Of a DNA stretch of 64,000 nt, positions 5,811 to 64,000 are shown in pieces. A program made the translations under genes and the position numbers. This DNA comes from Takakia lepidozioides. Its lineage: Eukaryota; Plantae; Bryophyta. How positions within the stretch are numbered: the first letter of the stretch is position 1; each line of letters starts with the position of its first letter. The stretch lies in assembly GCA_030704615.1 (NCBI GenBank), contig CM060734.1, positions 11,036,001-11,100,000 on the forward strand, written 5' to 3'. The notes under the pieces are model-generated. The model was not told the origin of the DNA, ran no database searches, and saw only the letters and a program-made list of their open reading frames with translations.

Positions 5811-5858
5811 TTGTTTCTTGTGTGGAGAGCAGTGTCATTTGTTAGCTTTCTTTTCTAT

Positions 5859-5948
5859 TGTGGTAGACTACTTTATTGTGCATATATGTGTGGTGTGGTT
5901 TGGACAGCGATGTAGTTGTGTAGCGATATGTATGCGCACGACAGCTGT
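5859..5948 (+). repeat. Truncated second copy of the family A LTR start
   Basis: Identical to 5410-5499; joins family C RT at ACAGCTGT. Confidence 0.8.
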
Positions 5949-7508: not shown

Positions 7509-7561
7509 GGATATTCTCCCCTTGTAGAAGTGGTTCGGGATTCAGGATTTAGTACCTCCTT

Positions 7562-34918: not shown

Positions 34919-36316
34919 GGGTGCTTCTGGGACACATTGTGTGTAAGAGGGACTTCTTGTGGATCCCAGAAGACAGAGCCAATTACAGCCTCACCACCCC
35001 AGTAAATGTTAAGAGTCTAAGGAGATTTCCTTGGACAAACCATTTATTACAGAAGATTTGTCAAAAGGTATGCCACAGCATAGCAACACCATTGAGCAAG
35101 CTTCTGAAGAAAGATGCAGTGTTGCATGGACAGCTGAATGTCAACAGGCTTTTGAGGAACTTACATTGTCAGTAACAACAACACCTTTGCTGATTAACCC
35201 TCACTAACATGTAGTATTTCTGTTCACTGTGATGCCTCAGGAGAAGCGTGGGAGCGGTGTTAGCCCAAAATGTTACAGGAAATATAGATTCACCTGTGTA
35301 CTATGCTAGCAGATTGACGAACAGTGCTGAAAGGAACTATAGCACAACTGAAAGAGAAGCACTGGCAATGATTTTTATGCAGTCAGAAATTCAGGCATTA
35401 CCGATTGGGAAGAAAGTTTATGTTTTATGTGGATCATCAGGCTCTGATATATCTGGGAACAAACCTTGATAAGTGGAAGGATAGCGAGGTGGTTAATAAT
35501 CTTGCACGAGTTTGAGTTCGAAGTTGTTTCAAGCCTGGCCGTTTGCATCTGTTTGCAATATCACTTGTCACGACTAACAACAGGAAGCCGCCACAGGAGT
35601 AGACGATCAATACTGATGCGAGTTTTATTTGTAATGGAGGTGCAAGGAAGTGCAAATGAATGGTTAGATTGGCAGTGGGCCAATCAGATACTACCTTACT
35701 CGTGGTCAGTGCCCACCTAGTTTATGGTAAGGAGGCAGAGGAAGAGAATCGCTATCAGGCTTTACCTTATACTATGGTAGGAGGCAGAATGTATAAGCTG
35801 GACCTGATGGACTACTTAAACGATGCCGTGTACCACCATGAAGTAATAAAGTTTTGGAGGAAGTTCATAAAAGAGTGCTGGAGGACATTTTTGGAGAAGA
35901 GACTGCCAGTAGGAAGATACTACTTGCAGGTTACTGGTGGCCTACTTTGTTCAAGGATGTACACAAGTATTGTCACAGTTGTGATGAATGTCAAAGGCTA
36001 GGACCTTTGCAGAGATCTAGAAAAATGCTTTGCATCCGACGATGCCTACTGAACCCATTCAGAAATGGGGACTAGACTTTGTTGGACCAATTAACCCACC
36101 GGCCAAGAATACAAGAACAAGTACATAATTACACCCTATTAATACTACGAAGTGGGTGGAAGCTAAAGCTTTGAGGGACAACACATCCAAGTCCACAGCA
36201 AGGTTCCTGTATGAAGAACATCTTACCGATTTGGCTGTCCTTGGAATTTATCAGTGATCAGGGAAGTCACTTCATTAATGAGACCATTGATCTATTGACT
36301 AAAGAGTTCATGATTG
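34919..36316 (+). pseudogene. pol: Family B pol fragment (RT end, RNase H, integrase); target of a family B insertion on the left and MULE-1 on the right
   Basis: [43 protein letters not shown]. Confidence 0.88.
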
Positions 36317-40025: not shown

Positions 40026-40570
40026 GAATTCATCATTCGCCCGCTGGATGGAAAAAATGGCGCTGAATTTCCATCCAGCGAATGAACTAGGACGCAACGT
40101 GGCCCTCTCGGGGGGAGAGGCCGACACCTGGCCGATAGAGATCAGCCTTCGGAAGGAAAAACGGCACCGAATTTCCATGCGGGGCCGTTCCGATGAGGTC
40201 GTCTCGGGGGGAAAGGCCGACACTTGGACGACAGAGAACATCCCCCGGATGGAAAAACGGCGCTGAATTTCCATCCGGGGCCTATCGGATGAGGTCGTCT
40301 CGGGGGGAGAGGCCGACACCTGGCCGACAGAGAACATCCCCCGGATGGAAAAACGGCGCCGAATTTCCATCCGGGGCCTGTCGGATGAGGTCGTCTCGGG
40401 GGGAGGCCAACACCTAGCCGACAGAGATGGAAAAACGGCGCCGAATTTCCATCCGGGGCCCGTCGGATGAAGTCGTCTCGGGGGGAGAGGCCGACACTTG
40501 GCCGACAGAGAACATGCCCCGGATGGAAAAACGGCGCCGAATTTCCATCCGAGGCCCGTCGGATGAAGTC
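40026..40570. repeat. ~95-bp tandem array carrying imperfect palindrome P2 (GGATGGAAAAACGGCGCCGAATTTCCATCC), 6 copies
   Basis: Copies near 40046, 40150, 40247, 40343, 40426 and 40520. Confidence 0.9.
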
Positions 40571-41291: not shown

Positions 41292-42366
41292 TGTTAGAGG
41301 GCTGCTTAGGACTTAGACGCTTTTACGGGATTTGTGGGGTACCCTTAATTTTTACACGGACTGAGACCAACAGGAGCCTTAGGGGTGACAGCAACAGGCT
41401 TTAGGGGGGGAGATACACAGCCCAACACAGCCAGTCACAGCCAACACAGCCCGTCACAGCCCGTCACAGTCCAACACAGCCAGTCGCAGCCAACACAGCC
41501 CGTCACAGTCCAACACAGCCAGTCACAGCCAGTCACAGCCAACACAGCCTGTCACAGCTTCGCACAGCCAACACAACCCGACACAGCCGCCACAGCTTCG
41601 CATAGCCCTACACAGCCCGACACAGCCAATCACAGCCGCCACAGCCTGATACAGCCAGTCACAGCTCGGCACAGCAGGGGAACAGTTACCATTGGCAGGG
41701 AACGACTGTGGGGGAACGACATCTGAAAACTGAACGTGTACTACAGAGATAATGGTTAGTGAGGGAAACGGTTAGAACAACGGGTAGGAAGATAAAGCCA
41801 GGAGCGGGGACGGGAAAGGGGATCACTTCTGGGGAATCACTTCTTGGGGATCGCTTATTGGGGGGGGGGGGACTACTTCTTGGAGGATTTCTGGCATCAC
41901 AGCTGGGAAATGAAGCGGAGAGCGCATCTCTGAGTAGAAAGAGGGAGAGCACGGAGTAGGAGGAGAACGATCTGTTGATGCTTGATGAATGCAAGCAGTA
42001 GAGTTGTAATGTAGAGCAGATTAGAGACTCCATGGCTTCAGCCTGATACTTGATAGATATTAATCTGATACATACTTCATACTCACATTGTGTCCAGAGA
42101 TCTGAGTGAAGCTGTGGAATGAATGGATGAGTTGATCGAATCCGATAGAATGCTGAAGCAATCTGATACTTAAATACCAACAGTAAGGTAACTAGCTAAC
42201 ATGAATACGGGAAGGAATACAAATAGGAAACACCCCCATGATACACTAGCTGTAGGTCATGACTGATTGTTCTGAGCGGGCTGAGTGCTTAGAGATTTCC
42301 AACTCTTCTATCTTGGAGTTCCCACCTCGGATAGCGAAGGGATGGGTGAGTAAAAGCCGCTCGACA
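41292..42366 (+). repeat. 5' LTR of Gypsy family B with internal CACAGCC repeats
   Basis: TG...CA ends, followed by PBS-like TTTGGCAACCATACTGGGGA (resembles the Athila tRNA-Asp-type PBS). Confidence 0.9.
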
Positions 42367-42595: not shown

Positions 42596-44738
42596 TGTAG
42601 TGTGAATGCAGGGGAGTAACATTGAAATTTTTGTTGGGCATCAAATTACGGCATTGGTGAAAAAGGGAGTGCCTGGTACTAATGTCGGGAGGGAATTACC
42701 CAGTCCTACAGGTAATTCCATGGGAACACTATGCTCTTGCTCTGCCAGGACAAAATATGGCTAAGTCATAACATGCGCATTGGAATGAATGATTTTCGTC
42801 GCGTATGTTTAACCTAGAAACTCGAGCTGAGGAAAACGAGGAGGAAGACGACGGGCAACTCTTCACAGCTGCTGCCGTAGTGTTGTCAGGCAGGCTGGCT
42901 TGGGAACTTACACCTGCGCCATGTGAATCAGCTTGCCTTAAAGCGCGACGTTAAGGGATCTGCTTGGCATTTTGTGCAAGGAGAAGCGGTGCCTCTTTCT
43001 GCGTGGTAATAATCAATTTTGAAAGCTGAGCAGGTGCTAAGAGCGGTGCACTACCGCTGCCGCCATTGTCTTGAAGAGTACAGTTATGAGGAGATGGAGC
43101 GCAGCAACAGCTGTTGGGGAATGAGAAGTGCAGGCTGGTGTGGATGCGACTCAGGTTATCTGTAATTAAGACTTGTAGTTGCCTTCTGTCTTAGAGCTGT
43201 AGGAGCACATCAATCCTTAGGGCAGAAGTACACATGTAGAAGGATAGGGTAGAGGTTGGCAAGCACAAGGATGTTGCCAGTTGATGAAGCAAGCCGTCAT
43301 GACATGATGAGAACTGGAATCAAGATGAGGAGAAGCGTTGAATATGGCTGATGACAGCGATGGTGAGGTGCCAGCTTGGCAGGCAGAACCACCGCTTCAC
43401 ACGAGTATAAAACAGATAAGTTCTAAGAGTGTTGGCTTCTCTTTTGGGCACTTAGGAATGACTTTGTGAAGTTTTTGGAACTGTCTCTTGTATCTGCTGA
43501 AGGGGACAGAAATGTGAGGAGTAGAAAAGGCCTTTGAAAATGGAATGAAGACACTGGAATTCAAACCAGGATAGGGTGGAGATGGATGCACCTGTTGTTA
43601 CACTGTCATTAGGAAAATGAGAGGGGACAAGGATATCTCACCTCAGGGTCAGAATGGTTGCTGTTGTTGTGTTCCTTTTCTTTATTTTCAGTGTCTTCAG
43701 CCAACAAAACAAGGCAGCCCTGGATGTTAAAACAGTGGAGCCAGTGTAGAACTAGCTTGGTGGATAGAGGAAAACAGGGATGGTCAGTCAGAAACGGATT
43801 TGAAGAGCTGAGAAGGGATGACGTGGATGGGGAAGAAAAGTCAATACTGTTTTGGGGTTTGGATCTGATTTCTAGAAGTGTTCTCAACATGTGAATGACT
43901 GATGTTTGCAGTTGAGGAGAAAAAGAGAGCTGTCAGGGTGTGTGATTTGAGATCTGTAGAAGGGTTGTGAAGCACCTTGGCCAAATAGGATCCACTTGGG
44001 GAAAGATAGTGCAAGGACCAGTCACTGGAGAGAGAGAGAGAGAGAAAGACTGACAGAGGGGCAGATCATGTCTTGTGTGACCAAGGTTGACTTCAATGAT
44101 GGATGCACTGGTTGCCTGGCTGGATGTGCATTGCATTGCATCATAGCCATGCTGTTGTGGAAAAAGTGAGGAATCCACACACGAAAGAAAAAGAGTGTGA
44201 GAGAAAGAAAAAGTGAAAAGGGAGAAAGGGTTGATGAGGGATGGACAAATGGAGAGGCAAGGTCAAGAAGACATGAACCCTGAATGATCAAACTAGTGGG
44301 CCTGCAGTTCATGGCAGATCTGAGCTGCCCATCCACCTAGACCATGATCTCATTACAAAAAGGGGCTTCCGACGTGTTGCTGACCAAGGGAACTGCCCAC
44401 AAGGGCAGTGTTTCATCACTGACATAGGGCTGATTGCATCACTGAATACATCGTGGCAGCATAGTTGGTGCTGTACCTGCAGGTAGAGGATGTTGTGTAA
44501 AAGGTAGAACCAAGAGTGAACAACAATTTGACTCCCCATCCATGTCTTCTCTTCCGCTGCGGCGTGGATGAGGATTGTTTGAACTCTGATCACGAAGGAG
44601 CTGAGGGAAACCCACAGCCAAGTGACGACAGTTGGACAGATTAGAAGAACGTTCCTTTCTTTTGCTCCGCTCAGGATGGAGGGAAGCACAATTAGAATTA
44701 TACAGAAGGGGATTCACGCCCCTTCTTTTCACACTACA
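42596..44738 (+). repeat. Solo LTR of family C in the family B leader
   Basis: TGTAGTGTGAA...TTCACACTACA 11-bp inverted ends; flanks CTGG/ATGG are only a near-match; homologous to 9102-11349. Confidence 0.78.
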
Positions 44739-45121
44739 ATGGAGAAAGGAGTGATAAAGATTTATCAGGTGGCCTGTAGAGGAAGAGCACGTTGGTTACC
44801 AACACTGGTTTATGTGATAGCATTGCTATCCATTAAGCGAGTAGAGTTTGAAGGCTGGGAGGAAAGAAAGGTGAATGTTTATACTCATATGCATGAAGAG
44901 CTTGTACTGGTAAAGATTGGATTCCAAAGGATATTCTATGGATCAAACTCACACCAAGAACAGCTTTCCAGACTTGTTTGCCATATGGTTATATGGTAAC
45001 AGAGACTTCTAGTATAGCCAAGGGTGCATTGAAGCTCGAAAGAAACCCAGGCATATACGAGAGATATTCCAGAACAGAGTTTTGGTTATTGCCACATTAA
45101 AAGAAATGAAAGACATGGGAC

Positions 45122-47652
45122 ATGAGTGATGAAAGAGAAGCTAGACGCCAGAGATATTCAGCAAAAAGAGAAAGCTATCTGAAAGCTAATTATCCATATC
45201 TTTGGGAGAGAGGAATAGACATAGGGGAATCATCTGGACCTCTCACACCATTAAGATCAGAGAGTACATCACCCATACCGGAAGAACTAGAGTTGGATGC
45301 CACTCCTTCTTTTTCTTTGCAAGAAAGATTAAGGGAATTGGTACGGGAAGAAGATCAATCACGAGGTGAAAGATCTGAGGTACATCCCTAGATAAAAGAT
45401 TTGACAGAAATCTTTGATAAGAGTTGGCATGGAACACCAAAAGTAGGAACTCCAGTTTCTGAAGTGGAAGGTGAAGAAGGAGGAGAGGATGTGGCAGAGC
45501 CAACGGAGAGTTCAGACTCTCCAACACCATTACAGTTGAGTTACATGAGTGAAGAAGAAACCCAAGGGCAGAACTTGGAGGATGATAATAGAGAGAATAA
45601 ATTGGAAGAGGAAGAGTATGAAGAAGTAGACCCAATAGCTGAGGTTGAGACTACAACCAGGACATCCCAACCCGTTGGACCTGGATCAAGTGGAGCACTT
45701 GGATCACAGGCCAACGAAGGTGTCAGCTTAGGGGGATCAGGCGGGCTGCCTGGATCTGGCTCTGGGGGGACAGGGAGTGTGGGAAGTAATGCAACTGGAG
45801 CTGGGAATACTGTGAATATCGTGGGGCCAGTAGCAGGGAGTGCTCAGGGGCCACCACTTGGTGGAAGATCCACCACAACTACAACAAGTCCTGAAGGACC
45901 AGCACCAGCAAGGGTGCCAGCACCTGTCAGTGGGCAGAAGGTAGGGCCACAGATGGCGTTACAACCAACACGAGCAAAACCACCTTTTCCAATATATTCA
46001 AGAAAAGGGGATCCCGATGTACACATTAGCCAATTTGAGCACATGTGTATAGTGAACAATGAGAATGGCGATGATGCCAAGATGAGACTGTTTCCGTGTT
46101 CACTTATAAAGAAAGCAGTGAATGGTATGCAAGATTCCCTGATAATCATTTCCTAACCTGGAATGGCTGAGTACAGCATTCCGAAATAGGTTCAGGACAG
46201 TAAAACTGAGGATGAAGTGTATGGAAGTTTACAACAGTTAAAGCAAAAGAAGCATGAAACTGTTGAGGAGTATATGGAAAAGATGGAATTGATGATGAAA
46301 AAGCTGGCTGCTGTACCAGCACCAGGTTTACAGAAGACTTGGTTTGTGAGTGGACTAAGACCAGAGTTGCAGAAGAAAGTGGATATGTTACCCCATAATA
46401 CAGTGGAGGAGGCATTTGAAACAGCAAACAGAATTGAGCAATTGGGAATGCTCAGGAGAGAGAAAAGGGATGATGAGGACTCTGAGGATGAGTCAGATGA
46501 AGAAGAAGAGCAAGAACTGAAAAAGAAGAGTAAGAGAAAGGAGAAGTTGAAGAGGGATAACTATGAGAAAAGATTAGAAGAAATCTTGAAGAAGTATGCC
46601 ACAGAGGCTGCAACACATTGGAGGAAGGGTGTTTGGTGTGCAAAGTGCCAGAATGAAGGCCATACCACCACTGAATGCCACATGAAGGAGAAACACTGTA
46701 CTATCTGTAAGATGGATAACCATTCTACTGAGAATTGTTACTACAACAGAAGGACAGCTGCAAGAGAACCTAGGCAAGTAAGGGTGCATCAGGTGCAGCC
46801 CCAGCCAAGAAGAAACAATGATCAGGACCACTATGGTAGGCCTGGTGGTTATAACAATGGCATGGAAGGGAGAGGTAATTCAAGAGGGAATTACCAAGGA
46901 AATTCCAGAGGCAACTATCAGGGTAATCCAAGGGGGAATTACCAGCCAGGGAATCAGGGTTGCCAGACCAAAGCAGAGATTACCATTGGACAGCTATTGG
47001 CTGTGGCACCTTATTGTAGACACGGCTGTATCAAGCAATCAATCGAATTGCCCAGGAGACAGGAAACACAGACCTGAACAGCAAGGTGACCAGTTATAAT
47101 GTGAAGCCGGAAGGGCGAGAAACAGTCATGGACTTTGATGATTCTATGCCAGTAATCCAATTGAGAATTGGAAGCACAGAACTAACTGATGTACTGATAG
47201 ATGGAGGCTCTGGAGTAAATATCATGACAGACCAATTAAGGAAGAAGCTTGGTCTAAGTAACATGAAACCAGCCCCATTTACAGTAATAATGGCAGATCA
47301 AAGAAGTGTACAGCCATTGGGATTGATAAGAGGAGTTAAGATACAGATACAGAAGATGATCTTTATGATCACAGTAACTGTGTTGAAGATGGATGAAGTC
47401 ATGGAGGCTTACTCCTTATTATTGGGACGTCCTTGGCTGAAACAGGCCAGGGTATTCCATGACTGGAATTCTCAGTTACTAACCGTGCATAATGGGATGC
47501 ACGAGATACAAATTACCACAAAGAAATCTAGTAGATTACCTGCTACGAGAAGACCTCGAGGGGTCAGAGAGTATGACTGGAGAGGAGGACTGGATGAGGA
47601 GCAGGAAGCTACTCTGTTCGCTGCACACCCAGAGTGGGAGCAGGTTGCAGAG
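45122..47652 (+). pseudogene. gag: Family B gag and aspartic protease, truncated at 47652
   Basis: DPDVHISQF, WFVSGLRPEL, two CCHC knuckles, VLIDGGSGVNIM, LLLGRPWL. Confidence 0.9.
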
Positions 47653-48625
47653 TCGCTCTCGGACGCGGATTCTATTACGAACTTCCCTACTCTGCCTTTC
47701 ACAATTCTATGTTTGGCCTCACGCCTCATTATAATTCTCTGCTCATTCCCGTATGTCAATTGCTCTAACCGAGTAGGCCTATCCTCCCTGCTGATGGCTT
47801 CTCTGGCAGCCGTGTCTGCATAGGCTGGTAGAAAAAAAGGCTTCTGGTTTCTGGCAAAGAATGGCCGATGCGATTCTGTCTCTTCCTCTACAACAAGGTC
47901 CGATTCGGGCAAGTCTCCCAGCTTCTCCTCGTCGGACGACTCTGCAAGGCTGAGTGTACGCACAAACATAGAATGAAGTACATTAGAGAATTCAAACAGG
48001 GAATCATCGGCAGGTTGCATGGTCCCTACAACCGAAACCAATACACTTACTATGGTGCAACTCACTCGAAGACAGGCATTGGGGGAAGCGGCTTCAGGCG
48101 CCCCTGCATCGAACGAATTTCCTGGACTTCCTCCTCTTCATCTTCCTCCTCCCCTTCCACGTCATCTTCTGCGTTTTTGGGATCCTCAGTCGGAGGCAAA
48201 CGCTGAAGGCCCGCCAAATTGTAATCGTACAAGGCCGTATCCCCCTCAAATGAGAACACAAATCGGTTCGACATCCTTCCCGCCCACATACAGGCACCTG
48301 CAAATTCATACGACACAACCACAACCAAACTCAAGAATGAGTCGCTTCCTCGCACAAGCAAACATACACAAACGGAAATGGTGTCAATTTTGGTGCCGCA
48401 TTCAATTAACGTTCTCACCTGTATTTGCAGTGATGTCGAGGACCCTGCCTTCAACATCCATACATGTTTCCATGAGCGTCTGGGATGAATGCATGACTCC
48501 TGGTCCTGCCATATCTCCATGGCTTGCCCGACAAATCACAAAGAATGTCCTTCTCTCCCACATGGTTGAACAGGACGTTATACTCCAGTGGATCAACTAT
48601 GGAATCAACAAGTCTTCCTGTTTCA
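47653..48625 (-). pseudogene. MULE-2 N6A/N4C methyltransferase-like gene, 3' exons
   Basis: DPLEYNVLFNH...KPWRYGRTRSHAFIQTLMETCMDVEGRVLDITANT/G-ACMWAGRMSNRFVFSFEGD (intron 48298-48418); tail LPAYADTAAREAI...KFVIESASESD is homologous to the MULE-1 gene. Confidence 0.72.
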
Positions 48626-49045
48626 CGTAATTTGAATTTCTAATGTTTCTTCACGAAGCAAAATGCCTGAAAGATAAGAGTCTGCAGAGAAGGAAATGTC
48701 CTGGAGGTTTTGCTCCTCCGCAAGCTCCAGCAGGTTCTGATCGTCGCCAAGTCGTACCACGTTGTCGTCCTCTCCTTCTGTCAGCTCAATGGGCCACCCT
48801 TCTACAGATCCAACTCCCACATCTCCAGCGGCCTCCACCGCATCCGTGTTTTTTGAAATTGACTGCAAACCCAATATCTCTGCTTCCAGTCTCCCTAGGG
48901 GTTTTACTGGCGAAGCCATGGGCTCCTTCTGCTTCCTCGACTTCCGAACTCTAGGTGGGCTTTTCTGAGGCGATATCTGAGGTGTTGAATGAGGACTCGA
49001 TGCACTTCCACCTTGCGAGCGCAGCACCCGGGCAGGAGTATCCAA
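48623..49045 (-). pseudogene. Low-complexity ORF, possibly the N-terminus of the same gene (internal deletion)
   Basis: Same strand and abuts the MTase exon; no recognisable domain. Confidence 0.3.
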
Positions 49046-49599
49046 AGTTGACTGTGTTGCTTCGCCCCCTGCGATCCCTCCCCAGCTCCCATGTCAAATA
49101 AACAGGAAAACATGAGACACTGCACGCAAAAAAAAAGGTGTAGGAATATTGCGTATGGAGTGCTTCACATCCGCAAAGCACGAATCTCTCACTGGTGGGC
49201 GATCCGAGTCTCCGGATAACGAGGTCTACATTTCATGCATGAGACGGAGCTTAAGTCGTGTCGTCGGCGGCTTCCCAAAATCCCGCGTCCTCCTTCTCTT
49301 TGCCGGAGTCACCTGACCTTCCACAAACTCTATGCTACCACTATGCCGCATAAGGAGAGGAAACGTAGGAGAATGTCACTGCAGAAGGGCAAGGAGCGAG
49401 AGAGCGAAGCGGTGGAACATGCAACCACTCTACACGAGCAAATGTGTAAGCAGCCACGTCTCCCGAAGCGTTGCCACCGTCCACCACTTTCTGCCGTATG
49501 GGTGATGAAGAGATTGTGACCCCTGACACGTTCGCACGGATGAAGTCGACTGGAACACGACGCGTGCCAGTTCCAGCCACCAGTACAAGATGGTTTATC

Positions 49600-51290
49600 C
49601 GAATTGCGGCACCAAAATACCTTCCGTTCACCGGATGTTGTTCCCGGAGCAGCCGACATTGAATGAAATATCCGCACATCATGAAACCCAACCGCCATGA
49701 AAATCCCCTGCCTATGACATTCAACAGTCAGGTCGGTACGTTTCATCAGCGGACGGATGAATTTCGGCGCCGAAATTCATCCTATTCAAGTGCTTTCGTA
49801 CACAAACTTACAAATTTCGGCGCCGCAATTCATCGCTTCCCAAGTCCTCATTCGTCATGAGCAAACCTGTCAGTGGGATATCGGAGCCGGAATTAATTCC
49901 GGAACAGTGGAAACGGCTGCACTTGGGCACATTTCATCCATATTTCGGCGCCGAAATTCATTACGAATATCTCCGTCCACACGTAGACGAGGTGAAATCA
50001 TCCATATTTCGGCGCCAAAATTCATCCAGAGCGAAGACTAAATCGGCACCATGCTATGCTTTGCCGCCATCATTGCCCCTGACGGATGCTGTCCATGCCT
50101 GTTGGACTTGCCATTTCTGGACATTTAACTATAATTTCGGCGCCGAAATTATACTTTATGTGCGGCAACGTCCCGTGCGAAAAAGACCACTTAATGGATA
50201 CTGTCGGTTTCAAATGAAAAAAACGGCTAAAATACAATTAATTTTGACAGAATGGGTTCAATATGCCGATTTCTCCATTAAATGCAGAATATTCCTGTTA
50301 TCTTCGTCGGAACGGGGTATTTCCAACGATTTACGGAAAATTATATCATCCAGAAGCAAATAGTAAGTGTCGGGTTTGGACGAATTTCGGCGCCGAAATT
50401 CATCCGTCGCATAGAAAATGTAATATTAGAGTTACTCATTGCGGACAGTAAGGATGAATTTCGGCGCCGAAATTCATCCATTTCAAAGAAAAATAAATAT
50501 TGGAGGGAGGGCATTGGATGAATTTTGGCGCCGAAATTCATTGCTGGCGAAGAAAAAAAAAATTCGGGAGGACTTCGGATGAATTTTGGCGCCGAAATTC
50601 ATTGCTGGCGAAGAAAAAAAAAAATTTCGGGAGGACTTCGGATGAATTTCGGCGCCGAAATTCATTGCTCGCGGAGAAAAAAATAAATTCGGGAGGACTT
50701 CGGATGAATTTCGGCGCCGAAATTCATTGCTCGCGAAGAAAAAGGAAAATTAGAAGGGAGGACTTGGATGAGATTCGGCGCCGAAGTTCATCTGTCGCAA
50801 AGAAAAAAAAAAAAAAAAAAAACTTCAGATGAATTTCGGCACCGAAATCCATCCGCAGGGCAGCAGAATTAGGGTCGGAAAAGGAGATGAAGAATGAATT
50901 TCGGCGCCGAAATACATCCATTCTGCCGATTCAGGATTACTGTCATTCGGATGTCGGCACCGATATCCGGACACGTGGTGAATCACGACTGTAATCAGGA
51001 ACACATTCATCTGTATTTTGGCATCCAAATTCAACCCTCATGTGCAGAAACAATTTGATGAAGAAGATGTTCATCCGAATTTCGGCACCGAAATCCATCC
51101 GTTGGATGCTTGGTCAGTTTCATGAGGTGAACAAATTACTATTTCTGTCGCCGGAATTCATCCCCTGGCTTCCAAAGTTGTTACATGACAGAGATGTTCA
51201 TCCAGATTTCGGTGCCGAAATTCATGGGAAGGCCTGATTTATTGTAGTCCAAGTGGTTGTACATTACAATTCAGGCACCAAATATCCGAT
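49600..51290. repeat. Array of ~20 copies of palindrome P3 (GGATGAATTTCGGCGCCGAAATTCATCC) at ~60-65 bp spacing
   Basis: Perfect 28-bp palindromes at 49755 and ~50452; run at ~50379, 50452, 50516, 50577, 50640, 50702, 50766, 50827 and 50892; degenerate copies on both flanks. Confidence 0.93.
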
Positions 51291-51600
51291 GTGAACTTGC
51301 TGTTGTCGTCCGTTTTTGTAACGTACGTTACATACCTTCATCTTTACGTGCACTGATCACCCATCTTGTTGGATACGGAATCCTCCAGAAAATCATTTGT
51401 GTTATTAGGTAGGACACACTCTTCTCACTGCAGGACTTCGCTGCGGAACGTACCGAGAGGTCCCGTCTTCAACATGGACTCCCGTGTTTGGGTAAACGTG
51501 TACTTCCATCCTGATTCTCTGAAAGCTAAAATACGTTCCACGAAATCCAATTCCCAGTCGTCATCCTCCTCCCACGAGAAGCTCTTCGCCCCGCATACCG

Positions 51601-52020
51601 GTGGGTGACCCCGCAGCTTGGCCCACCCATCGGTGGGGGAAACTGAAAAGACGGCGGCCACCAACAAAGGCGAACGACACTAGGATGGCCAACGCTCTTG
51701 CAATGCCCTGCATAGTGCAAGGTTGCACGGATGTTCCTCACCCCGGGATGGGGCGCATATTTCAGTTGTCAACAGCTGGGTCTGCTGCGCGCAGTGTCGT
51801 GTATACAATCACGGTTTCACAGTACCCAGCTTGCAACTGTGAGGACTTCCTTGTTATGGAATCGAAGAATGCAGCATACGTCCCCTGCAAACACCTTTAT
51901 TACATTTTTCTGAAGCGCATGAGTTGCATATCCGCAGTGGACGTCTTCATCCATGCTCCAACACTGAGTTTCAACGAGCTGCACAAGGCCCTACGGCAGG
52001 ACACTGGTCGGACTGCTTGA
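51601..52020 (+). CDS. MULE-2 SWIM zinc-finger protein or transposase C-terminus
   Basis: PTHRWGKLKRRRPP...PACNCEDF...VPCKHLYY...FIHAP; a clear protein homolog of 1294-1794 with diverged DNA. Confidence 0.78.
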   Translation: MGDPAAWPTHRWGKLKRRRPPTKANDTRMANALAMPCIVQGCTDVPHPGMGRIFQLSTAGSAARSVVYTITVSQYPACNCEDFLVMESKNAAYVPCKHLYYIFLKRMSCISAVDVFIHAPTLSFNELHKALRQDTGRTA

Positions 52021-53882
52021 CATTCCACATTCGGGAAGGAGAAAGTGACAATTATATTACATTCATCTTCTTGCACCCTATTTTTTTTGGAGGAATTATA
52101 CACTTAGTGGTGCTGCATCGCCATGGCTACATGTGAATTTTGGTGCCGCAATACATGAGAATGTGGTTTTTGGCCATGAATGGCATGCGCATGCTTTTTA
52201 TATTTTGGTTGTCTACAAACGGATCCGAGTAAAGCATACATTGTGTGGAGATTAATGGGCATTGAGGCCTATTTCAGCGCCGTTTATGGTCTATGTACTG
52301 CATAGTGCTTCCTTGTTACTGCTCTTCATTCAATTTGTAGTGATTTCGCAGCCCATCCTGGCGTTTTCGTCCACCTCTATGAGAAGACTCCAATTTGCTA
52401 CAAATACATTGTTACTGTTCTGCAAATGTGATGTCTTTACAAGATTGCTAGTTCTGTGTCCCAGTGGGAAGGGTCCTACTGCACATTCCAGCATTTGCAT
52501 ACTGCACTTTGTGCAAACAGCAATCCATACGACAAAGGACACGTCCCAGCATACTGGCAGTGAATTGCAAAAAACCTTAACAGAAGATTATCCAAGCATG
52601 TATATTCCCCATATGGCACAGGGAAGCTGCTTGATTTCTGAATGAAAATGTATGTGCCATGAGTGTCGGCGAATCAAAAGCTCATGCTGGGCTGTAAACA
52701 ACAAATCCAGCACCATCATGTAATGTAGCATAAATCAAAGGCAAGAGTCTTTAATAGAAAGTATGTGTTCTAATAAAGCTCATCTAATGCACTAATGCTC
52801 AACAGAAAGAGTTGGAAGCATAGCCAGAAAGATCAAGATATGGGGGCAGATTTGAGTCGGCTCCCTGAAGAAACAGCTTGAGTCGACTTCACTTCATCTT
52901 GCTAGGTTTCAATCAATTGCAAGCTTCATGAATCATATTACGTGAGGGCCCTCACCTGGTCCCATCACATGCAATCAAAAAACAATGAAGTTAGTGAAGA
53001 TGTGGAACCCCAGGTGAATATCAGGCCTCACGCTTGTTATCGTTGTACAACATGCGTTCAAAAGCAAGAAGAGATCAAAAGCAAAGCAAAGATAGCCCAC
53101 AACCTTAAGGGTTTGTGGAAGAGGATTCAACATAGCTCCAAGAACTCGACAATCGACAACACAACCAAGCAACGGTTTGCTGATTTCTACGAGCATTTTA
53201 TCAGGTGAAGAGACTTCCTGAAAGTTTAAAAGCGGCGCTGGATCTTAATGACCATTGAATGGATCAACAAACAATCACAACATAGGGTAGATTGTCCACC
53301 AAGGGAAGAGACAACTTCATTGAGGGAATTGAAGCTCTGTCGCCATTGCATACCCCAAGGGGGATCGAAAAGTACTGGAATCTTGCGAGAGCACTTGCAG
53401 ACTGTCATAAAGCTTCTCCATAGCCATCAAATTCACAAGATTCGTGTTTAAATGAACCCTCTGACACCATCTCTCAGCTCCAGCAGAATCAAAACGCACG
53501 AGTACCGTGCAGATTTTTAGGGTAGAGGAAGAGATAGGGCAAACCTTCGCGATTTCATCCAAATTAGATGAAAAATAGGTAATGAGATGTAAAGAACTTC
53601 CCTGATTTCATCATGATGTCATCCAGTAGGGATGGCATCCAAAATAGAGTCTGGCTTTCATTAGGGTTGGTTCTCATGACCAAAATCATCCAAAGAACTA
53701 TCAGAGAATATTCTTTAATGGAATTCATCCATTTTCATGATTACATCTAGTATGGATGAAATTAAAATATGGTGTAGACAGAATTAGTCCAAGCCTTCTT
53801 GGGTTTTGGAAAAAATACAAGCAAGTTCCTTGTATAGAGGGAGAGGGAGAGAGGGAGAGAGAGGGATCCCACCAGCCAGCCC

Positions 53883-53948
53883 CTGGTATGGCATTCCCTT
53901 ATGGGATGAGTGTGGTATGCACTCACCCCGTAAGGGAGTGCATACCAG
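53883..53948. other. ~30-bp imperfect inverted repeat with an alternative internal 12-bp hairpin
   Basis: CTGGTATGGCATTCCCTTATGGGATGAGTG / CACTCACCCCGTAAGGGAGTGCATACCAG; TGGTATGCACTC / GAGTGCATACCA. Confidence 0.8.
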
Positions 53949-54059
53949 ACCCAATCTCATAAAAGCTCTCCCTCTTCTTTGTAGTTTGTATCACTGGTTA
54001 AAAAACCAAAGAGATAAAAAATCTACAATCCCATCTCCCTAGGTCATGAAAAAAGCATG

Positions 54060-57000
54060 CTACATATGAAGAAGGTATACAATCATATATTTATGAGTGT
54101 AGAACATACCTTTCAATTTTTCAATGAGCTCTTGTAAAGGGAAGAACAGGCCAGGGAAGGAACCCTGCTCAAGGAAGCGTGTCAATATACGGGTTAGTTT
54201 TCTGGTTTTGAAGCCATTCTTCCCAAGGGTATGTACGAGCAAACAACATTCATTCCAAGCCAGATTAACACTGCTGGAAATATACAGAATTGGAAAAGCT
54301 TGTGAAATCACTATGTTGTAGGATTGATTCATTGGTCTATTGATGTACTGGGTGTAAGAGAAAGGTAAGAGTCGTCTCTTATCATACTTCTGAAATTGGA
54401 ATTCCCCGGATTCAGGGTTTAATACAGAAATCTGGACATTCATGAAGCATGCTTCCAAACCTTCGTACGGGGATCCATTCTTAGTTCTTAGTAACTTTGG
54501 CTTGATTTCCACCACATTAAGTGGGTAGATCCACCGGGGATTACTGCTGCACCTGTCTGCATCAGGATTGAGAAATAGCATTGCATTTCCAATGTTAAGC
54601 CAACATATGTCATCGATATAACGGAAAGCATGTTGAAACTTTGGCATCAATTGAAATTGACCAAGAGCAGCCAGTCTTAAGATGAACTTAAGCTTGTATG
54701 AAAGGAAATAAGTGTTACACCATAAAGGTGAACACGAGAACCCCATGAGGATACCTGAAATCTGACGCCAAACACGGTCACCCAATGCTACGAAACAATG
54801 ACACATCAGCCATTTGTGGAGCTGAAGCAGCCTGGCTTCATGAAGCTCGATCCAGGTACCTGTTTTGGGAGAAGAAGGACTCCACTTGCACTTCCCGAAG
54901 GTCCCATTCTTTGTTTGGACCCAAAGGGTATGGTGTGACCGGGGCTGATCCATAAGATGTTGCTAGAAGGCCAGTTTAATCACATGCTCAATGGCATCAC
55001 CCAAGTTATCTTCACCTGTCAAGGGAATATTTTCATAGCATTGTGTGATGTCAGCCACAAAAACATCATAGATTTTTGTAGGAAGATTTAAAGTGAAATC
55101 TGTAATGCTGTCTATAATCCAGTACATGGCAGTAGACATTTTGAAGAATTATTTGTAAGTGTCTAAACATGCTCTAGCCCATTCCTTGACTAAAGGTAAC
55201 GGGAACATGGTGGCACATGTAACGAGGCTGGCGATTTCACTGAACACGCAATTGTGGGCATTGGTAATCCACCTATATTTTTTTTAGTGTACGAAAAGTA
55301 ACAGGGATTTCAGGTATCATATCCTGCACTTCACCAAAGAGGCTTTCCAAAACAGAGTCTGGTGATGACCATACCTCATCTTGAAGACATGGTCTAAAAT
55401 CCTTACCCATTAAGCGGTGATAGACTTGGGTTCTGATGTGCTTCACACATAGAAAACAAACATTGTTGTTACCCTTATCAAGACCAGACATATACAGGTG
55501 TTTGCCAGTCTAGTTCATCACGAGCTTCTTTCATGACAAGTGGGTTTCCCCCATGATGAGAGTAGTTGAACCTTGTCATACTGGCTTTTTTCTTCAATCT
55601 GTCCCAGCAAGTATTTTTTAGCCATAGACAACATTCTTCTGCCCATGGCTCTGCATAATCAACATGCAGAATATCACATATTTAAAAAAAGGCAAGTACT
55701 ACTTCTGCAACAACATCCTTGAGCAGTGTACTTTTTTGCGGGATATGGTTCATACCAAGGCTGAAAAGCTCTCTCAGCTTGGGGTGTCTTACGATGCTCG
55801 GATCCATAGTACGCACATGTTGTATGGGGGCTGAATCAGGTAATTGAATTCAGCCAATGTATCCGTATCATAGAAGGCTTTGAGCCTCTTGGCAGTATTG
55901 CAGAGGCAAGGAGGTGACTCAATCAGATCTGTCATGAAGTTAAAGTCACGGAAAACAGAAGCATGCAGGTAGTAATCAGTGCTACTGTGCTTATGATATG
56001 TCCATCCAAACATTATTTCCTCAATCATCAGAGCCATATCAGCCTGTCCAAAAATCAGGAATGCTTCTCTTATCAAACCCTTAGGGTTTATCCACTCCAT
56101 ACCCCGGTTTGGGTACAACATGTGTACAAAACCAATAGGGGCAGGTTTTGATACATGGTTAATGAAATTCCTACCATGGGCATGTGCCTCAATCCTTCTT
56201 CCAACATTCATTTCATCTGCACAAACAGGGTAAAATAACATACCATGAGAGAGTTCTTCACAGGTCCATCCAAGAATTGAAGTCTCTCTTGTGGATTGGG
56301 GACACCTCCCCATTGCTTTGTCTAGTCTGAAAAGACTCTTGGCTGGCGATATTGACAGTGGTGCTTGAATTGGAGCCAGAACCTCCGTATGAAGTTCTGG
56401 TGAAGGCCTTTGAATTTTCAGAGTTGTGGGAGGAGCTCTGCCCACGGCCGGAACGCCCGCCTCTTTGGTAGAGGCCTCTGCCACGCACAGGGGTACCTCC
56501 TCCCCGATTGTTACCAGCCCTGCCTTGCTGTATAGGAGCTGGTCCATCCATGCGTTGTCTTTTGTAACCACTGAAGTGTGGTTTAGGGAGGCTATCTGAA
56601 AAAGTTCCAGGTTTGAGTAGCCTTTCAATGTATCTGGCACCTTAGCATCAGGATCTGCAGCAAACTCATAGGCAACCTCCATGATAATCTCTTGAGTGAT
56701 CTGATCCTGTGCCAGAACAGCGGATCGAGCTGTTTTCATCATCCACACTAAGAAATTATAATACTTGGTCTGAATAGAAGGAAATGCATCGTCAGGGACG
56801 AACACCGTAAGGTTGTTTAGCATGTACCAAACAATGTGATCGAACCATGCTACACTTCCGATGCATGCTGATGGCGCACCACCTTGTCCACAATTGCATC
56901 TGATGTATGGCCTATGCCAGTTAAACAACTGACTTTTGTGGTTCTTAGAACTTGTTGAACCAGTCGGGAAGTCATTTTTTGTCCTCAAAGTCATGTTGTC

Positions 57001-57645
57001 CCCCTTATCACACATTTTGTAGTAGAAGGTCCTCAAAGGCCATGAGACCGCAAGTGGTTCTTTTTATCCTTTGGAAGCCTTCTTTTGCATATGTTGCACA
57101 CCTGTTGCGTTCTGCAGGTGTGAGGTCATTTTACCCACATATCAATTGATATGGGAGCCATCAGATTGATGTTTGCATGCGGGTGCCACATCATGTGGTC
57201 GTTATTTGCTACCTCAAGCTCCACGGCCCTTGGAGACAACCAAGGGACGAACTGTAGGTGTTGCTCCAGCAGCCCTCTCTTGCTCCACTTGAGAGAGCTC
57301 AACCTGCTCACAGAAATCCCTTATTGCATCCTTTTCTCCTTTAGGCAGAATCATATGTCCTAGAATAGGATGGTTAGTCACTGATGGAATAAAATCTTTT
57401 TCCATGGCATTGGAAGATTTCTGTGTGGAAGCAAGCTGTTCATCATCCGGGTTTGCCAGCCTAAGTGCTTCTTCAATTGCAGCTCTTTTTTTCTCCCAAT
57501 AAGACAGTTCACTAGCATCTTGTTCCAATATCTTAGCCAATTTGGCATTGTACTCGTTGAGTCTTTCAAGGTACTTGCCACCTCTGTTTGCACAAATTCC
57601 AAGAGCTACCCAATCCTCCAGGGCTAATGTTTCAAGCAATAAAAC
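54060..57645 (-). mobile_element. Penelope-like retroelement (Naiad/Chlamys-like), frameshifted RT ORF
   Basis: PCLC...HVRTMDPSIVRHPKLRELFSLGMNH, DKGNNN (PLE DKG motif), QISGILMGFSCSP, FRYIDDI, YDKRR...ISQ. Confidence 0.78.
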
Positions 57646-59204
57646 GGGGATTGCTAGTCCGTGAGCGGCTCACGTGAGCGGGAAGATGCGTGAGCGAGAA
57701 GATGCCAATCCGTGAGCGGAAAGATGCTCACGTCAGAGGGTGTAGGGGCCCACATCTGCGGACGGTGATAACCCAGGGGACCTATTCCCATGGGAACGAG
57801 TGAAAATGTAATGCGTACTTGGATGTGAAGCTGGATGAACGTTGGATGAATGGTGGATGGATGAAAAATATTGGATGGATGGTGGATGAATGTTGGTTGG
57901 ATGTTACATGCACGATGGCTGAGAGTGGGGCGAATGATGGATGATATATGCTGGAACACTGGATGAATGACGGAGTGACAAATTTGGAATGGTAGAATTT
58001 CGGATAGTTGATGGATGGACATATGTTTTGGATGCATGAACAATTTACGTGCGTATGTGTAAAGACTGGAAGTATTGTGGACCCACACAGATTGTATGAA
58101 TGGACTTGCAAGTGAAGATGAAAAATTTTATGTCCAGAAAATGTCTTATGTAGACAATGTTGGGAAGGGAGGCACGCAGTTGACGCAAGAGAAGCAATCT
58201 CCTCACAGTTGATTCCCTAGATATTCCTAAACAGGTGGAACCAATCGAAAAATGTCTATACACTGGAACTGGTGGTAGCACCGGACTCCGATGCACTAAT
58301 GTCCATAAAGATCCTAGCCCTGTTGTCCACCTTTTCTACACGATTGAAGCAAACTAGAGGGGGAGAGTCACAGAGAGTAAACTCCTTAGCGGCAGCCTCC
58401 GCATAGCATGGCAACTGTAGGGGGGCAGGTGGGCTTGGGAAAAATTCCGGGATAGCAAAGAAAGGGATGCTTCTCCTCGTTTTTGGTGTCCTGCAAAGAT
58501 TCCCAAAGTTGCAAGACCAGTAAGCAGAAAGACAGGACCGCGGAAGGGAAATGCTTTGTGACAAAAATGAAGGTCTGAATAATGAAAAATCCGACATGTC
58601 ATCCAAAACAAACCGGACTTACGTACACTCAAAGTCGGAGTCCACGTCGAGGTCTTCATCTGGAAGTTCCCGCTCGTCGAAAACTGTTTCTTTGTGTGGG
58701 GCTGATGTTGAGCCGGAGGTGAGTTGTTGAATCTCGCATGAAAACAGCTCCGCATCCCCCTCCATGCCGAAGAAGTGTCTACTGGCGCTCTTACAGGCAT
58801 GGAATGTTGCACCTGCAAATGTAGAACGAATGGTTAAAAAACATGAATCATTACAAAATTCAAGATCATAGATACGGTAGAGCAGGAGACTTGGCAGGGC
58901 ACACCTGTTCCCAAAGACAAGTCCACCACCCGCCCCCCATGCCGGCTGCAAGTCTCCACCAGAGTCTGCATGAATGCTAGAGATTAATACCAACCACCTC
59001 TCCAAGGCACACCATTCGTCCTTTTCAAGGTCCGCCCGGAGTCCACGTAATTGTACATGACATCGTCCCCCACAGGCTCGCAGGTGGGGTCGATGTGTGC
59101 TGCAAGGTCTCTCAACTGGAACTCCGCAATACTAGGAGGGAGGGTGTCCTTTTGCATCCTCACCAAGCATAAAGCCTCGAACACCCGAGTCTGCATGCCC
59201 CCCC
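57646..59204 (+). mobile_element. MULE-3: third related element, left end, inserted into the PLE
   Basis: Terminus GGGGATTGCTAGTCCGTGAGC (15/21 to either MULE-1 end), GTGAGCG subterminal repeats, GGATG repeats at 57820-58040, then the MTase-like gene in the same orientation as in MULE-1. Confidence 0.65.
58256..59204 (-). pseudogene. MULE-3 N6A/N4C methyltransferase-like gene, 3' exons
   Basis: DDVMYNY...GVPWRGGWY*SLAFMQTLVETCSRHGGRVVDLSLGT/G-ATFHACKSASRHFFGMEGDAELF (intron 58813-58904); tail LPCYAEAAAKE...RIFMDISASES. Confidence 0.72.
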
Positions 59205-61515: not shown

Positions 61516-64000
61516 TTATGTGTTGGGATTCACATCCTCCAATGCCTCCGCCACTTGCATCCTTACACATGACTCATTCTCACCCAAGCTGACACCAGTG
61601 ACATCATGTACCACGCGCCGTGAGCGCGGCTCCTTCTGAAGTACTACTTTCCAGTTACAAACGTTGGAGGGCTCATCTGCAAAAAAAACTTGCTCGACTT
61701 GCCATGGAAATGTGAATGGTTCATCTCCCGGTGGCAACATGCGATCGAAGTCCACGAGTAGGAAACCATACTCATCCTTCTTCATGGTGCGGTTGCGACC
61801 TGTCAAGCTTGCTCTGACCCATTCACATATGAATACTACAGGAGTGACAGCACCATACTGAAGCTGTAAAATTTCACGAACAACACCGACATATTGCAGC
61901 TGGTTCATGACAGGGTTACCATCCACACCCCTTCCCGTTGACTCTTCGGCAAAAATCTGTGCAACCCCAGAGTCGAATGTGACATGGTAATCAACCACAC
62001 CTGTTTCCACCACTCTGTAGTGATTTCCGTATGCCCACATAGACCGAAATGAACGAGCAACAAACCCTGGTGGCTTACACAGATGACGAATATTTGCATC
62101 ATATGCTGCTCCTCTTGAAACAACATTTTGTACTGCCGACTGTATCCACATATGAAAAGCAGGCAAAGGCAACATGTTTTCGGGGTATGGAACGGTGCGT
62201 TGGTGTGCATTTCTCCCTTGGGTGCTGTATGTGGCTCGAAATTCGGCTCTGGCTGATTCTATGGTGGCCTTCTCAATATCATAAAGTCTGGTCATACTCA
62301 ATTCACACTTAGTCAGGACCATAGTATGTACAAAGAGGCTGAGTGAAAATTGAGAATGCGCCAATTTTGTGTCCGGAAATGGTTCCCAGAGTTAGCATGT
62401 GAAGCCAAATAAATGATGTATACTTACCTCAGAAACGGTCTCATGCACGCCGTGTTGTGAAGCACATAGTCGTGTGCACTAGCCCGAATCTCAGCCAACA
62501 GTTTCCTTGGAGTTCCAAAGCCCTCTAATACTTCTCCCGCAACACTTTCTTCTTCGTTGCAATCCCAGACCCTTCTACGAGTTCCTGGAAATGCAGCTAT
62601 GTACTCTGTGAGGAGGCCAAGAGCCTCATCAAGAGAATACCTCCTGGCCATGCAACCTTCTGGCCGGGCATAGCTCTTCACATATCCCTTCAAATTTTTC
62701 ATGTACCTCTCGATGGGGTACATCCAACGCGAACTAACAGGACCACAAACCTCCAATTCATTCACAAGGTGTAGCACAAGGTGGGTCATGAGATCGAAGA
62801 AGAGGGGGGAAACTCTTTCTCCAACAAACAAAGCGTTACAACCACATCCTCCTTCAGGGCTGGTAGTTCCTCGGGATCGACTATTTTCATGCACAATGCG
62901 CGAAATACACGAGATAGCTTCATGATTGCGAGCCTTGGACCTTTGCCCAACAAACCTCGAATGCACAAAGGTAGAACTTGTTGCATCAGTAGATGGTAGT
63001 CATGACTCTTCATGTGTGAAAGCTTGTTCTTAGCAATATGCTTCTTAAATGAAGCACCATACCCTGTCGGTGTCTTTAGAGCACCCAAAGTTGCATAGAA
63101 GGTAGTAGTTTCCTGTCGATTCAACACGTAAGGAGCCTACGGCTTCACCAACTTCCTGCCATCTCCGGGGTGGGGTTTTAACCATAAGTGAGGTTGTATG
63201 CCCTCATTCTCCATGTCCTTCCTGCTCTTTACTGTGTCCTTTTCCCCCAATATGGTGCGCAATATGTTTTCACAAATGTTTTTTTCACAGTGCATAACAT
63301 CAAGGGTATACCGTATCAACAAATCCTGAAATCATGGAACCACCATCAATATGGTATACTTTGATGGTAAAGCCAAGAGATGACATCTTAATAATGGGAA
63401 AAGGAAGAAACCAGCCTTGCATGCTGCAGACAGTATCCAGAGAGACAAAAGCCAGACATTTTCATGGAAACAACCATATTGCTGCTACATGTGCCATACA
63501 TAGGCGACTCCAAACTTGCTTCATGCAATTTGCATTAGGCTGAAATCTAAGTCGTGTGTGATGATCCTTACAACTGTATCCATGCAACTATGAAATCAGC
63601 CCTGCCAACAAACAAACAATGAAGACATACCCACCTTCCAATATGGCAGGTTCCAAAGGATCGACCTTCGCTTCATGCCATGGGATTTGGCAGGGCACAC
63701 ATTCCGGCGACGGCTGCCAAATGTTTCCATGAACCTCTCGTTTTCCTCCGCATTTTGGAGCTGATCCACAGTGGATACTTGGGGGGGGGGGGGGGGGTTG
63801 TCTGTGATCGGAGGCTCCATTGAAGTGGTTGCGATTGCGTCTATATGGATGGCCTGCTAGTAAGAATTTTCTGTGCCCCTGGTACACCATTTTGCTCAGT
63901 GCACTGGAGTGCCTGGCATCAAGATTGGGCCCGCACACGGGACAAGCCTTGTAGCCCCCAACTGCACACCCTGCTAGCATGGCATATGCAGGATAGTCAT
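61516..64000 (-). pseudogene. CACTA TnpD/Tnp2 transposase (Transposase_21, DUF4218 and DUF4216-like regions)
   Basis: GYKACPVC, YQGHRKFL, LPYWK, LDVMHCEKN, MKSHDYH, MTHLVLHL, GPVSSRWMYPIERYM, PEGCM, KDEYGF, EPF...QVFF...WKVVL; introns 63326-63634 and ~62288-62426. Confidence 0.92.

Follow-up and report, generated by a model that had tools for sequence, protein, structure and literature searches.

A decayed multi-exon gene with a putative ParB-like and a remote methyltransferase-like region in the repeat DNA of Takakia lepidozioides

A stretch of 64,000 nucleotides from the bryophyte Takakia lepidozioides (GenBank assembly GCA_030704615.1, contig CM060734.1, positions 11,036,001 to 11,100,000 of the forward strand), hereafter referred to as the window, contains three related coding stretches, all on the minus strand, which are labelled copy A (the region of approximately 22650-24353 plus upstream exons), copy B (47653-48681) and copy C (58256-59190). 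These are real homologs but broken or partial copies of one old intron-bearing gene, the C-terminal part of which is methyltransferase-like; all three are disabled pseudogenes, none of which translates through. An earlier, sequence-only reading of the window had described the three stretches as protein homologs with strongly diverged DNA, and this description held. Indeed, tblastx linked all of them (A 23363-23791 with B 48206-48693, sum E 2e-23; A with C 58721-59121, sum E 1e-7; B with C, sum E 5e-6), and blastn among the three copies returned zero matches at the DNA level, the homology being present at the protein level only. The same reading had placed a phase-1 GT-AG intron in the last glycine codon of motif I, the coordinates of which proved exact in A, B and C. 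In all three copies, this motif-I intron begins at ACAG^GT and finishes at AG^GT (carets mark splice sites), so that the last glycine codon of xGTG is split after its first base. A second common intron, of phase 0 (cag^AC), opens exon X at 23779 (A), 48681 (B) and 59190 (C), and a third, of phase 2, closes exon Y at 23223 (A), 48066 (B) and 58623 (C). Furthermore, the last exon common to A, B and C carries an LPxYAxxAA motif and a (V/I)xxSAxESD motif (Table 1).

Relatives of the gene were found with a profile made from the first half of exon X, which was searched against 1.84 billion proteins. Two of the five matches (P0123 and P0125) were repeat artefacts; the three true relatives are located on the contigs L002 (a metagenome scaffold of 5.1 kb), L003 (9.3 kb) and L004 (2.9 kb). 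Both L002 and L003 contain the whole gene, collinear with A, and splicing of the methyltransferase-like domain of L002 at canonical sites yields 325 residues without a stop codon. The cag^AC site precedes exon X in L002, L003 and L004, and the motif-I codon is split as G^GG, A^GG (arginine) and G^GA, respectively, the position of the motif-I intron being kept in all six homologs (A, B, C, L002, L003 and L004). Protein identity among the six homologs is 35-55%, and reaches 83% for C versus L004. An extra GT-AG intron occurs in L002 at 3058-3254 (AFLTM^VSQG), within the N-terminal part of the methyltransferase-like domain, where A is continuous; therefore, an intron was gained or lost inside the family.

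In the full gene, a DGNHR-type exon and then the middle exons precede the N-terminal half of the methyltransferase-like domain, after which come exons X and Y. Copy A is a whole gene, but frameshifted. Its exon Y changes frame at 23342, a site at which one extra base is present in most family copies in the DNA sequencing runs. Copies B and C possess only exons X and Y and the last exon, which make up the C-terminal third of the gene carried whole by A, L002 and L003. A is the only copy in the window to possess sequence resembling the upstream half of this domain (23867-24136). Copy B is cut at 47652, which is the end of a retroelement repeated elsewhere in the window. As L004, the relative of C, has the upstream-half exon approximately 100 nt from exon X, copy C is either truncated or interrupted by more than 4.8 kb, the rest of the window. 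The 5' end of gene A is interrupted by a gap of 500 N (27144-27643).

Table 1. Features of the gene copies and of the neighbouring elements in the window (carets mark splice sites or centres of palindromes)
Feature	Position	Strand	Remarks
Copy A ParB/sulfiredoxin-like exon	26330-26801	-	KMFFVWDG ^ NHRLLAW; frameshift at 26472
Copy A N-terminal half of methyltransferase-like domain	23867-24353	-	motif IV (FLDIPDG) and ACPMVLDDRGCVVVL; three frame breaks
Copy A exon X	23516-23779	-	motif VIII (FDAYCFVK) to motif I (VLDLICGTG); frameshift near 23655-23659
Copy A motif-I intron	23416-23515 (100 nt)	-	phase-1 GT-AG, last Gly codon
Copy A exon Y	23223-23415	-	ASMWAGR...AYE, then acidic tail; 5' splice site GA^GTGAGT at end
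Copy A last conserved exon(s)	22653-23040	-	LPSYAAKLA..., RVRKYICDSADESD; further frame break; stop codon 22650-22652
Copy B exon X	48419-48681	-	stop 48640-48642, frameshift 48483; motif I VLDITANTG
Copy B motif-I intron	48298-48418 (121 nt)	-	phase-1 GT-AG, same codon as A
Copy B exon Y	48066-48297	-	ACMWAGR...SFEGD, then acidic tail; ends GA^GTGAGT
Copy B last conserved exon	47653-47861	-	FFLPAYADTAA...FVIESASESD; cut at 47652
Copy C exon X	58905-59190	-	in-frame stop 58984-58986; motif I VVDLSLGTG
Copy C motif-I intron	58813-58904 (92 nt)	-	phase-1 GT-AG, same codon as A
Copy C exon Y	58623-58812	-	ends AC^GTAAGT
Copy C last exon	58259-58490	-	...LQLPCYAEAAA...IFMDISASES; stop codon 58256-58258
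Palindrome array, 16 sites of 24-28 bp	49755-51219	.	GGATGAATTTCGGC^GCCGAAATTCATCC; between copy B and SWIM open reading frame, upstream of B
Family-A palindrome	22097-22120	.	TGGAAATGCGGC^GCCGCATTTCCA; just downstream of gene A
Third palindrome type	40106-40570	.	GGATGGAAAAACGGC^GCCGAATTTCCATCC, CGGCGCCG core; about five 96-bp units
Small open reading frame with SWIM-type CxC...CxH finger	51601-52020	+	divergent from copy B
En/Spm (CACTA)-type transposase gene pieces	61519-63980	-	Transposase_21, DUF4218, DUF4216; 2.3 kb upstream of C, same strand

The last approximately 250 residues of the protein appear to be a remote homolog of the beta-class (PF01555-type, circularly permuted) N6-adenine/N4-cytosine DNA methyltransferases. 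An alignment of the six spliced homologs was compared by means of hhalign with 14 beta-class DNA methyltransferases, namely eight phage enzymes (L005-L012, three of which were checked as PF01555) and six members of the YhdJ family; of L006, which is flanked by Shiga toxin genes, the methylase gene alone was included. This resulted in a probability of 95.6% (P 1.2e-8, score 65.3, 224 columns), family positions 58-304 being matched to template positions 13-273 with every motif collinear, and compared with a score of 13.7 +/- 2.8 and a maximum of 24.8 in 100 column shuffles. Against the YhdJ family alone, the score was 34.0, the maximum of 150 shuffles being 27.5. It is this profile-profile comparison alone that upholds the earlier label of a methyltransferase-like gene. 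As in the permuted beta class, motifs IV-VIII come first, followed by the variable region, motif X and motifs I-III, which places motif I close to the C-terminus; exon X starts at motif VIII (F-D/E-A-x-C-x-V-K) and ends within motif I of this order, and the name given earlier to the latter motif was hence right.

Both the catalytic motif and the cofactor motif of this domain deviate from those of the enzymes. Motif IV reads DLPE in L002 and DIPD in A and L004, where beta-class enzymes have DPPY, the catalytic pattern (D/N/S)PP(Y/F/W) being replaced by D(I/L)P(D/E)G in three diverged families. Similarly, the S-adenosylmethionine (AdoMet) motif I, FxGxG(T/S)T, reads DL/I-x-x-(G/S/N)-T-(G/R)-A in the family, its first glycine being kept in two and its last glycine in five of the six homologs (arginine in L003). 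The aspartate after strand 1 (V-L/V-D) and the glutamate ending strand 2 (F-x-x-E) are present in all six. A non-catalytic role is favoured because three diverged families share this alteration of motif IV and because motif I has not retained its first glycine. Most likely, the methyltransferase fold would have been kept and canonical catalysis lost, leaving a DNA- or cofactor-binding module; this version takes slightly more than half of the weight within the explanation preferred below.

Other searches for the nature of the gene were negative. Pfam assigned no family to it among approximately 45 open reading frames and exon pieces of the window, and no exon of A, B, C, L002 or L003, nor a spliced A piece of 70 amino acids, reached the gathering score of PF01555. 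No match was returned by BLASTP of the spliced copies against YhdJ, by tblastn of one A piece against phages, by a word-indexed protein search with two A pieces, or by a search of the language-model resource Atlas with a frame-mixed open reading frame of 159 amino acids of A. Profile searches of the PDB with the exon alignments gave no significant match, the top match of the N-terminal half exon being the flavivirus NS5 methyltransferase (E 0.5).

The N-terminal part of the gene may encode a ParB/sulfiredoxin-like domain. It contains a DGxHR-type motif after a beta strand, which reads KMFFVWDGNHRL(Q/L)AW in L002 and A and QMFFIWDGNHRHMAW in L003, and its language-model (Atlas) neighbours include ParB/sulfiredoxin, ParB_N and DUF6551 clusters (scores 0.89-0.95, and 0.95-0.96 for ParB/sulfiredoxin-like neighbours). 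Pfam and NCBIfam were blank for PF02195 or related models in the intact exon of L002. In A, L002 and L003, one spliced gene contains both the ParB-like and the methyltransferase-like region in collinear arrangement.

The age of the gene and the selection on it were assessed from codon comparisons. Synonymous differences have reached saturation among the pairs of A, B and C (proportion of synonymous differences, pS, 0.73-0.93), the corresponding nonsynonymous proportion (pN) being 0.30-0.45 in the core, which gives pN/pS values of 0.32-0.61 with bootstrap upper bounds of 0.42-0.78. For C versus L004, the ratio of nonsynonymous to synonymous substitution rates (dN/dS) is 0.135 (bootstrap range 0.075-0.227; dS 0.89, dN 0.12; 153 codons), at a DNA identity of 75% overall, 82.5% in exon X, 74.5% in exon Y and 44.6% in the intervening intron. 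It is clear that purifying selection acted in the past, during the divergence of the family. The earlier description as an old, selected gene is thus supported by the synonymous saturation among A, B and C, by the dN/dS of C versus L004, by exons that are far more similar than the intron, and by the intron kept in six of six homologs. Neither a dN/dS value near 1 nor the neutral drift expected of a Pack-type captured fragment was seen for C versus L004. Its further statement that the gene is not a one-off Pack-MULE (Mutator-like element) capture also stands, as the sixfold intron and the low dN/dS misfit the single capture of a host fragment.

Family A occurs at very high depth, and hence in a very large number of copies, in the DNA runs of one organism. 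Among the best-supported differences listed, most family A copies in these runs differ from the window copy by an indel of 1-3 nt at approximately ten sites, three of which (23342, 24138 and 26472) coincide with frame breaks of window copy A. The latter copy is therefore a decayed member of a family, the common form of which probably reads on, at least at 23342, 24138 and 26472. A spliced contig of family A, from a run guessed to be RNA, covers 25708-25642, 25561-25437 and 25353-25191, and skips a GT-AG intron of 80 nt (25562-25641) and a second one of approximately 83 nt (approximately 25354-25436). An intron also occurs in L002 at the position of the latter.

The neighbourhoods of the gene copies differ from family to family. 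Every perfect palindrome with arms of at least 9 nt in the window has a (T/G)CGGC^GCCG(A/C) core, and family-specific palindromes with a CGGCGCCG core are located beside families A, B and L003. Besides the array upstream of copy B and the site downstream of gene A (Table 1), a second family-A palindrome is found at 2046-2067, beside another SWIM copy. L003 contains two palindromic sites, CTCC(A/G)CGGC^GCCGCGGATG, at 89-102 and 579-592, which are 490 nt apart and located approximately 0.8-1.3 kb upstream of its ParB-like exon; their GCGGCGCCGC core is common with family A. The scan for perfect palindromes in the window revealed none by copy C, and no methyltransferase-like gene was detected in the window adjoining the third palindrome type. 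The open reading frame with the SWIM-type finger has homologs at 1294-1794 (+) and 37134-37568 (-). In two of these small frames, the SWIM model scored 15 bits versus a gathering score of 19.6, and their Atlas neighbours are SWIM-only clusters; no Pfam match to a DDE, MULE or Transposase_mut domain was obtained among the approximately 45 window open reading frames scanned. In family B, the SWIM open reading frame is divergent from the gene, across the palindrome array; in family A, comparison of repeated segments places it downstream of the gene on the same strand; and in the window neighbourhood of copy C there is none. The En/Spm-type gene upstream of C could be the carrier of this copy or an insertion into its intron. 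The three copies have three different kinds of neighbour, and nested insertions, together with the gap of 500 N at 27144-27643, have obliterated the element ends.

The surroundings of the copies are rich in other repeats. Ty3/Gypsy-type pieces (gag, protease, reverse transcriptase, RNase H and integrase) are nested around the three copies, at 2699-8689, 28800-36316 and 42596-47652; one of these pieces stops exactly at 47652 and thereby truncates copy B. Segment 1-2646 is 91-96% identical to two separate, reordered stretches, namely 20656-19381 followed by 37673-36317; this split and reordered duplicate indicates that family A was rearranged or broken up by nested retroelement insertions. Just downstream of copy C, two long open reading frames (297 and 415 amino acids) without a Pfam match are located at 54060-57036 on the minus strand, the first of which has reverse-transcriptase-like motifs (SP...; FRYIDDI); these may represent an unusual retroelement. 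Finally, tandem arrays with a 10-nt period (CTGTGACGGG and its complement) are found in opposite orientation at 34530-34816 and 41415-41675, within longer inverted matching segments (33676-34918 versus 42575-41292).

Several known systems resemble the Takakia gene. The Ectocarpus transposon Sola1-1_Ec32 encodes an accessory protein of 1104 amino acids with a ParB-like and an N4-cytosine/N6-adenine methyltransferase domain (PMC12477816). Compared by description only, both would be large passenger proteins of repeated DNA elements with a ParB-like N-terminus and an amino-methyltransferase C-terminus; the Ectocarpus protein has been proposed to bind and modify its own element, and the same is proposed here. 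Unlike in Ectocarpus, the Takakia domains are invisible to Pfam, the catalytic motif reads D(I/L)P(D/E)G, the host is a land plant, and the carrier is undefined, its neighbours being SWIM open reading frames or En/Spm-type pieces and not Sola1. In the genome of the red alga Bostrychia, the Plavaka-associated gene (PAG) PAG2 combines a PF01555 methylase with a SET domain and PAG3 a ParB-like domain with a 2-oxoglutarate (2OG) oxygenase; they are carried by giant EnSpm, Mutator, Zisupton and Fanzor elements, with inverted-repeat arrays beside PAG3 (10.1101/2025.02.11.637652). The Takakia gene shares with these the PF01555-type and ParB-like domains and the adjoining arrays of inverted repeats, a feature of algal accessory genes that is represented by 16 sites at B, single sites at A and two sites in L003. 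In addition, the occurrence of PAGs with several transposon superfamilies is echoed by the differing neighbours of A, B and C. In contrast with PAG2 and PAG3, which are two proteins with SET and oxygenase partners, the Takakia domains seem fused in one spliced gene, in which no SET or oxygenase domain was seen.

With bacterial and phage PF01555 enzymes (Escherichia coli YhdJ and L005-L012), the Takakia domain has the permuted motif order in common over 224 columns, but it differs by an identity of only 18-22%, replacement of DPPY and a degenerate motif I; moreover, introns interrupt the Takakia gene, which also has an acidic tail and, on the C-terminal side, one more conserved exon. Among bryophytes, Marchantia polymorpha possesses the host N4-cytosine methyltransferases MpDN4MT1a/b, which are of prokaryotic type and have a TSPPY motif (10.1101/2021.02.12.428880). 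Both cases concern a bacterial-type amino-methyltransferase in a bryophyte nuclear genome; the two MpDN4MT1 genes are host genes arranged in tandem, which have a canonical TSPPY motif and the activity of which has been proven, whereas the Takakia gene is repeated, resides in repeat DNA and lacks the motif. METTL14 is an inactive methyltransferase fold. ParB-fused adenine methylases have been described by Iyer et al. in chlorophytes and chytrids, and the methyltransferase-like domain of the DIRS1 retrotransposon is an inactive fold as well (PMC4738411). Like the DIRS1 domain and METTL14, the Takakia domain would be a methyltransferase fold under selection with degenerate catalytic and cofactor motifs; these belong to other methyltransferase clades and have other carriers, the analogy being functional only. 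A literature search found no paper on such a gene in land-plant repeats.

The three stretches probably represent decayed copies of a single old passenger gene, multi-exon in structure and carried by repeated DNA elements; A is the whole gene, and B and C are C-terminal fragments. It is likewise probable that the full gene, represented by A and by L002 with its open methyltransferase-like part, encodes a ParB/sulfiredoxin-like DGNHR domain, a middle region, a methyltransferase-like domain of approximately 250 residues, an acidic tail and a brief conserved terminus. It is most suitably classed with the ParB-like/amino-methyltransferase passenger genes that algal DNA transposons carry, as a land-plant variant whose catalytic motif is non-canonical but conserved. 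As to its function, the protein would recognise the palindromes of its own element via the N-terminal domain and would then act on the DNA or chromatin of that element, the methyltransferase fold serving as a non-catalytic DNA- or cofactor-binding module. Several points weigh against this explanation. Pfam and NCBIfam are blank for all exons of A, B, C, L002, L003 and L004 and for a spliced A piece of 70 amino acids, and AlphaFold models of single exons were useless (predicted local distance difference test, pLDDT, 40.1 for the N-terminal half exon and 43.6 for the ParB-like exon). Comparison of the ParB-like exon with six YbdM/IbrB-type proteins by hhalign was at chance level (16.3 versus 12.9 +/- 2.6 for shuffles), and the ParB-like assignment derives from the DGNHR motif, the language-model neighbours and the published parallels only. 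Furthermore, the motif-I intron is crossed by zero RNA contigs, the RNA status of runs X9 and X10 being a guess; the gene is tied to no defined element by a transposase, terminal repeats or target-site duplications; and both the binding of palindromes and the loss of catalysis are inferred.

One alternative is that the domain is an active N6-adenine/N4-cytosine DNA methyltransferase with an unusual catalytic loop, which marks its own element with the N-terminal domain as a guide. Full collinear homology to PF01555-type enzymes, the strand-1 aspartate and strand-2 glutamate kept in six of six homologs and strong purifying selection would all fit such an enzyme, as do the same proposal for similar algal transposon proteins (PMC12477816) and the Marchantia host enzymes of bacterial type that form N4-methylcytosine (10.1101/2021.02.12.428880). 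It is nevertheless unlikely, given that in motif IV an acidic residue replaces the stacking aromatic one and a single proline is left (DIPD, DLPE), that the first glycine of motif I is serine, asparagine or glycine and the last one arginine in L003, and that the Pfam model is blind to the domain. That the copies belong to an ordinary multi-copy host gene family, or are Pack-type captured fragments, with pseudogenes lying in the window by chance, is very improbable. Such an origin would account for B and C being mere fragments, each beside a different kind of element, and for the lack of a transposase tied to the gene, but it is contradicted by the enormous depth of family A in the DNA runs, by the location of every copy within nested repeat DNA, by the private palindromes with families A, B and L003, and by the constraint between C and L004 (dN/dS 0.135), as fragments captured once would drift neutrally.

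The sequence-only reading had gone further and taken the gene as a core gene of an element lineage with a SWIM transposase. In this form, the gene would be the core gene of one Mutator-like lineage that co-diverged with a SWIM-bearing transposase, in a fixed layout with gene and transposase pointing away from a palindrome array between them. Copy B shows exactly this layout (copy B, array 49755-51219, SWIM open reading frame from 51601), and a homologous SWIM open reading frame occurs within a few kb in family A too; there, however, it is located downstream on the same strand and is not divergent, and C, without SWIM open reading frame or palindromes, lies behind an En/Spm-type transposase gene. 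The differing neighbours of A, B and C therefore weigh against a Mutator/SWIM-transposase core gene. In addition, the SWIM finger is sub-threshold, the open reading frames scanned yielded neither a MULE nor a DDE domain, and no SWIM open reading frame was noted on the short contigs L002 and L003, at which no search for one was aimed. This origin is hence quite improbable: membership of a Mutator-like SWIM-transposase lineage was not shown, a fixed SWIM linkage does not agree with the gene orders of A and B and the position of C, and the window copies themselves are pseudogenes and in two cases fragments.

Returning to the passenger gene of repeated DNA elements, a bolder form of this explanation may be put forward, albeit as a doubtful one. 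Land-plant elements would carry a conserved, spliced ParB-like/beta-class methyltransferase fusion, the catalytic loop of which has been remodelled to D(I/L)P(D/E)G; this fusion and private palindrome arrays with the CGGCGCCG core would jointly form a self-recognition module. This module would mark or shield its own element by binding or by non-canonical chemistry and would move between superfamilies (SWIM-linked and En/Spm-linked).

Transposons with their own DNA-binding and DNA-modifying proteins can write epigenetic marks on themselves or evade them. To our knowledge, the anti-silencing factor VANC of the Arabidopsis VANDAL elements is the only well-studied plant case. Up to now, reports of passenger genes combining ParB and methyltransferase domains have concerned brown, red and green algae. 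The present case shows that a gene of this kind is abundant, spliced and long under selection in a land-plant genome, that it adjoins cognate palindrome arrays, and that the alteration of its catalytic motif is conserved. On present evidence, the domain should not be called an enzyme, nor its carrier a Mutator element. Takakia may thereby offer a testable system, consisting of a protein, a defined site of 24-28 bp and a species with many copies.

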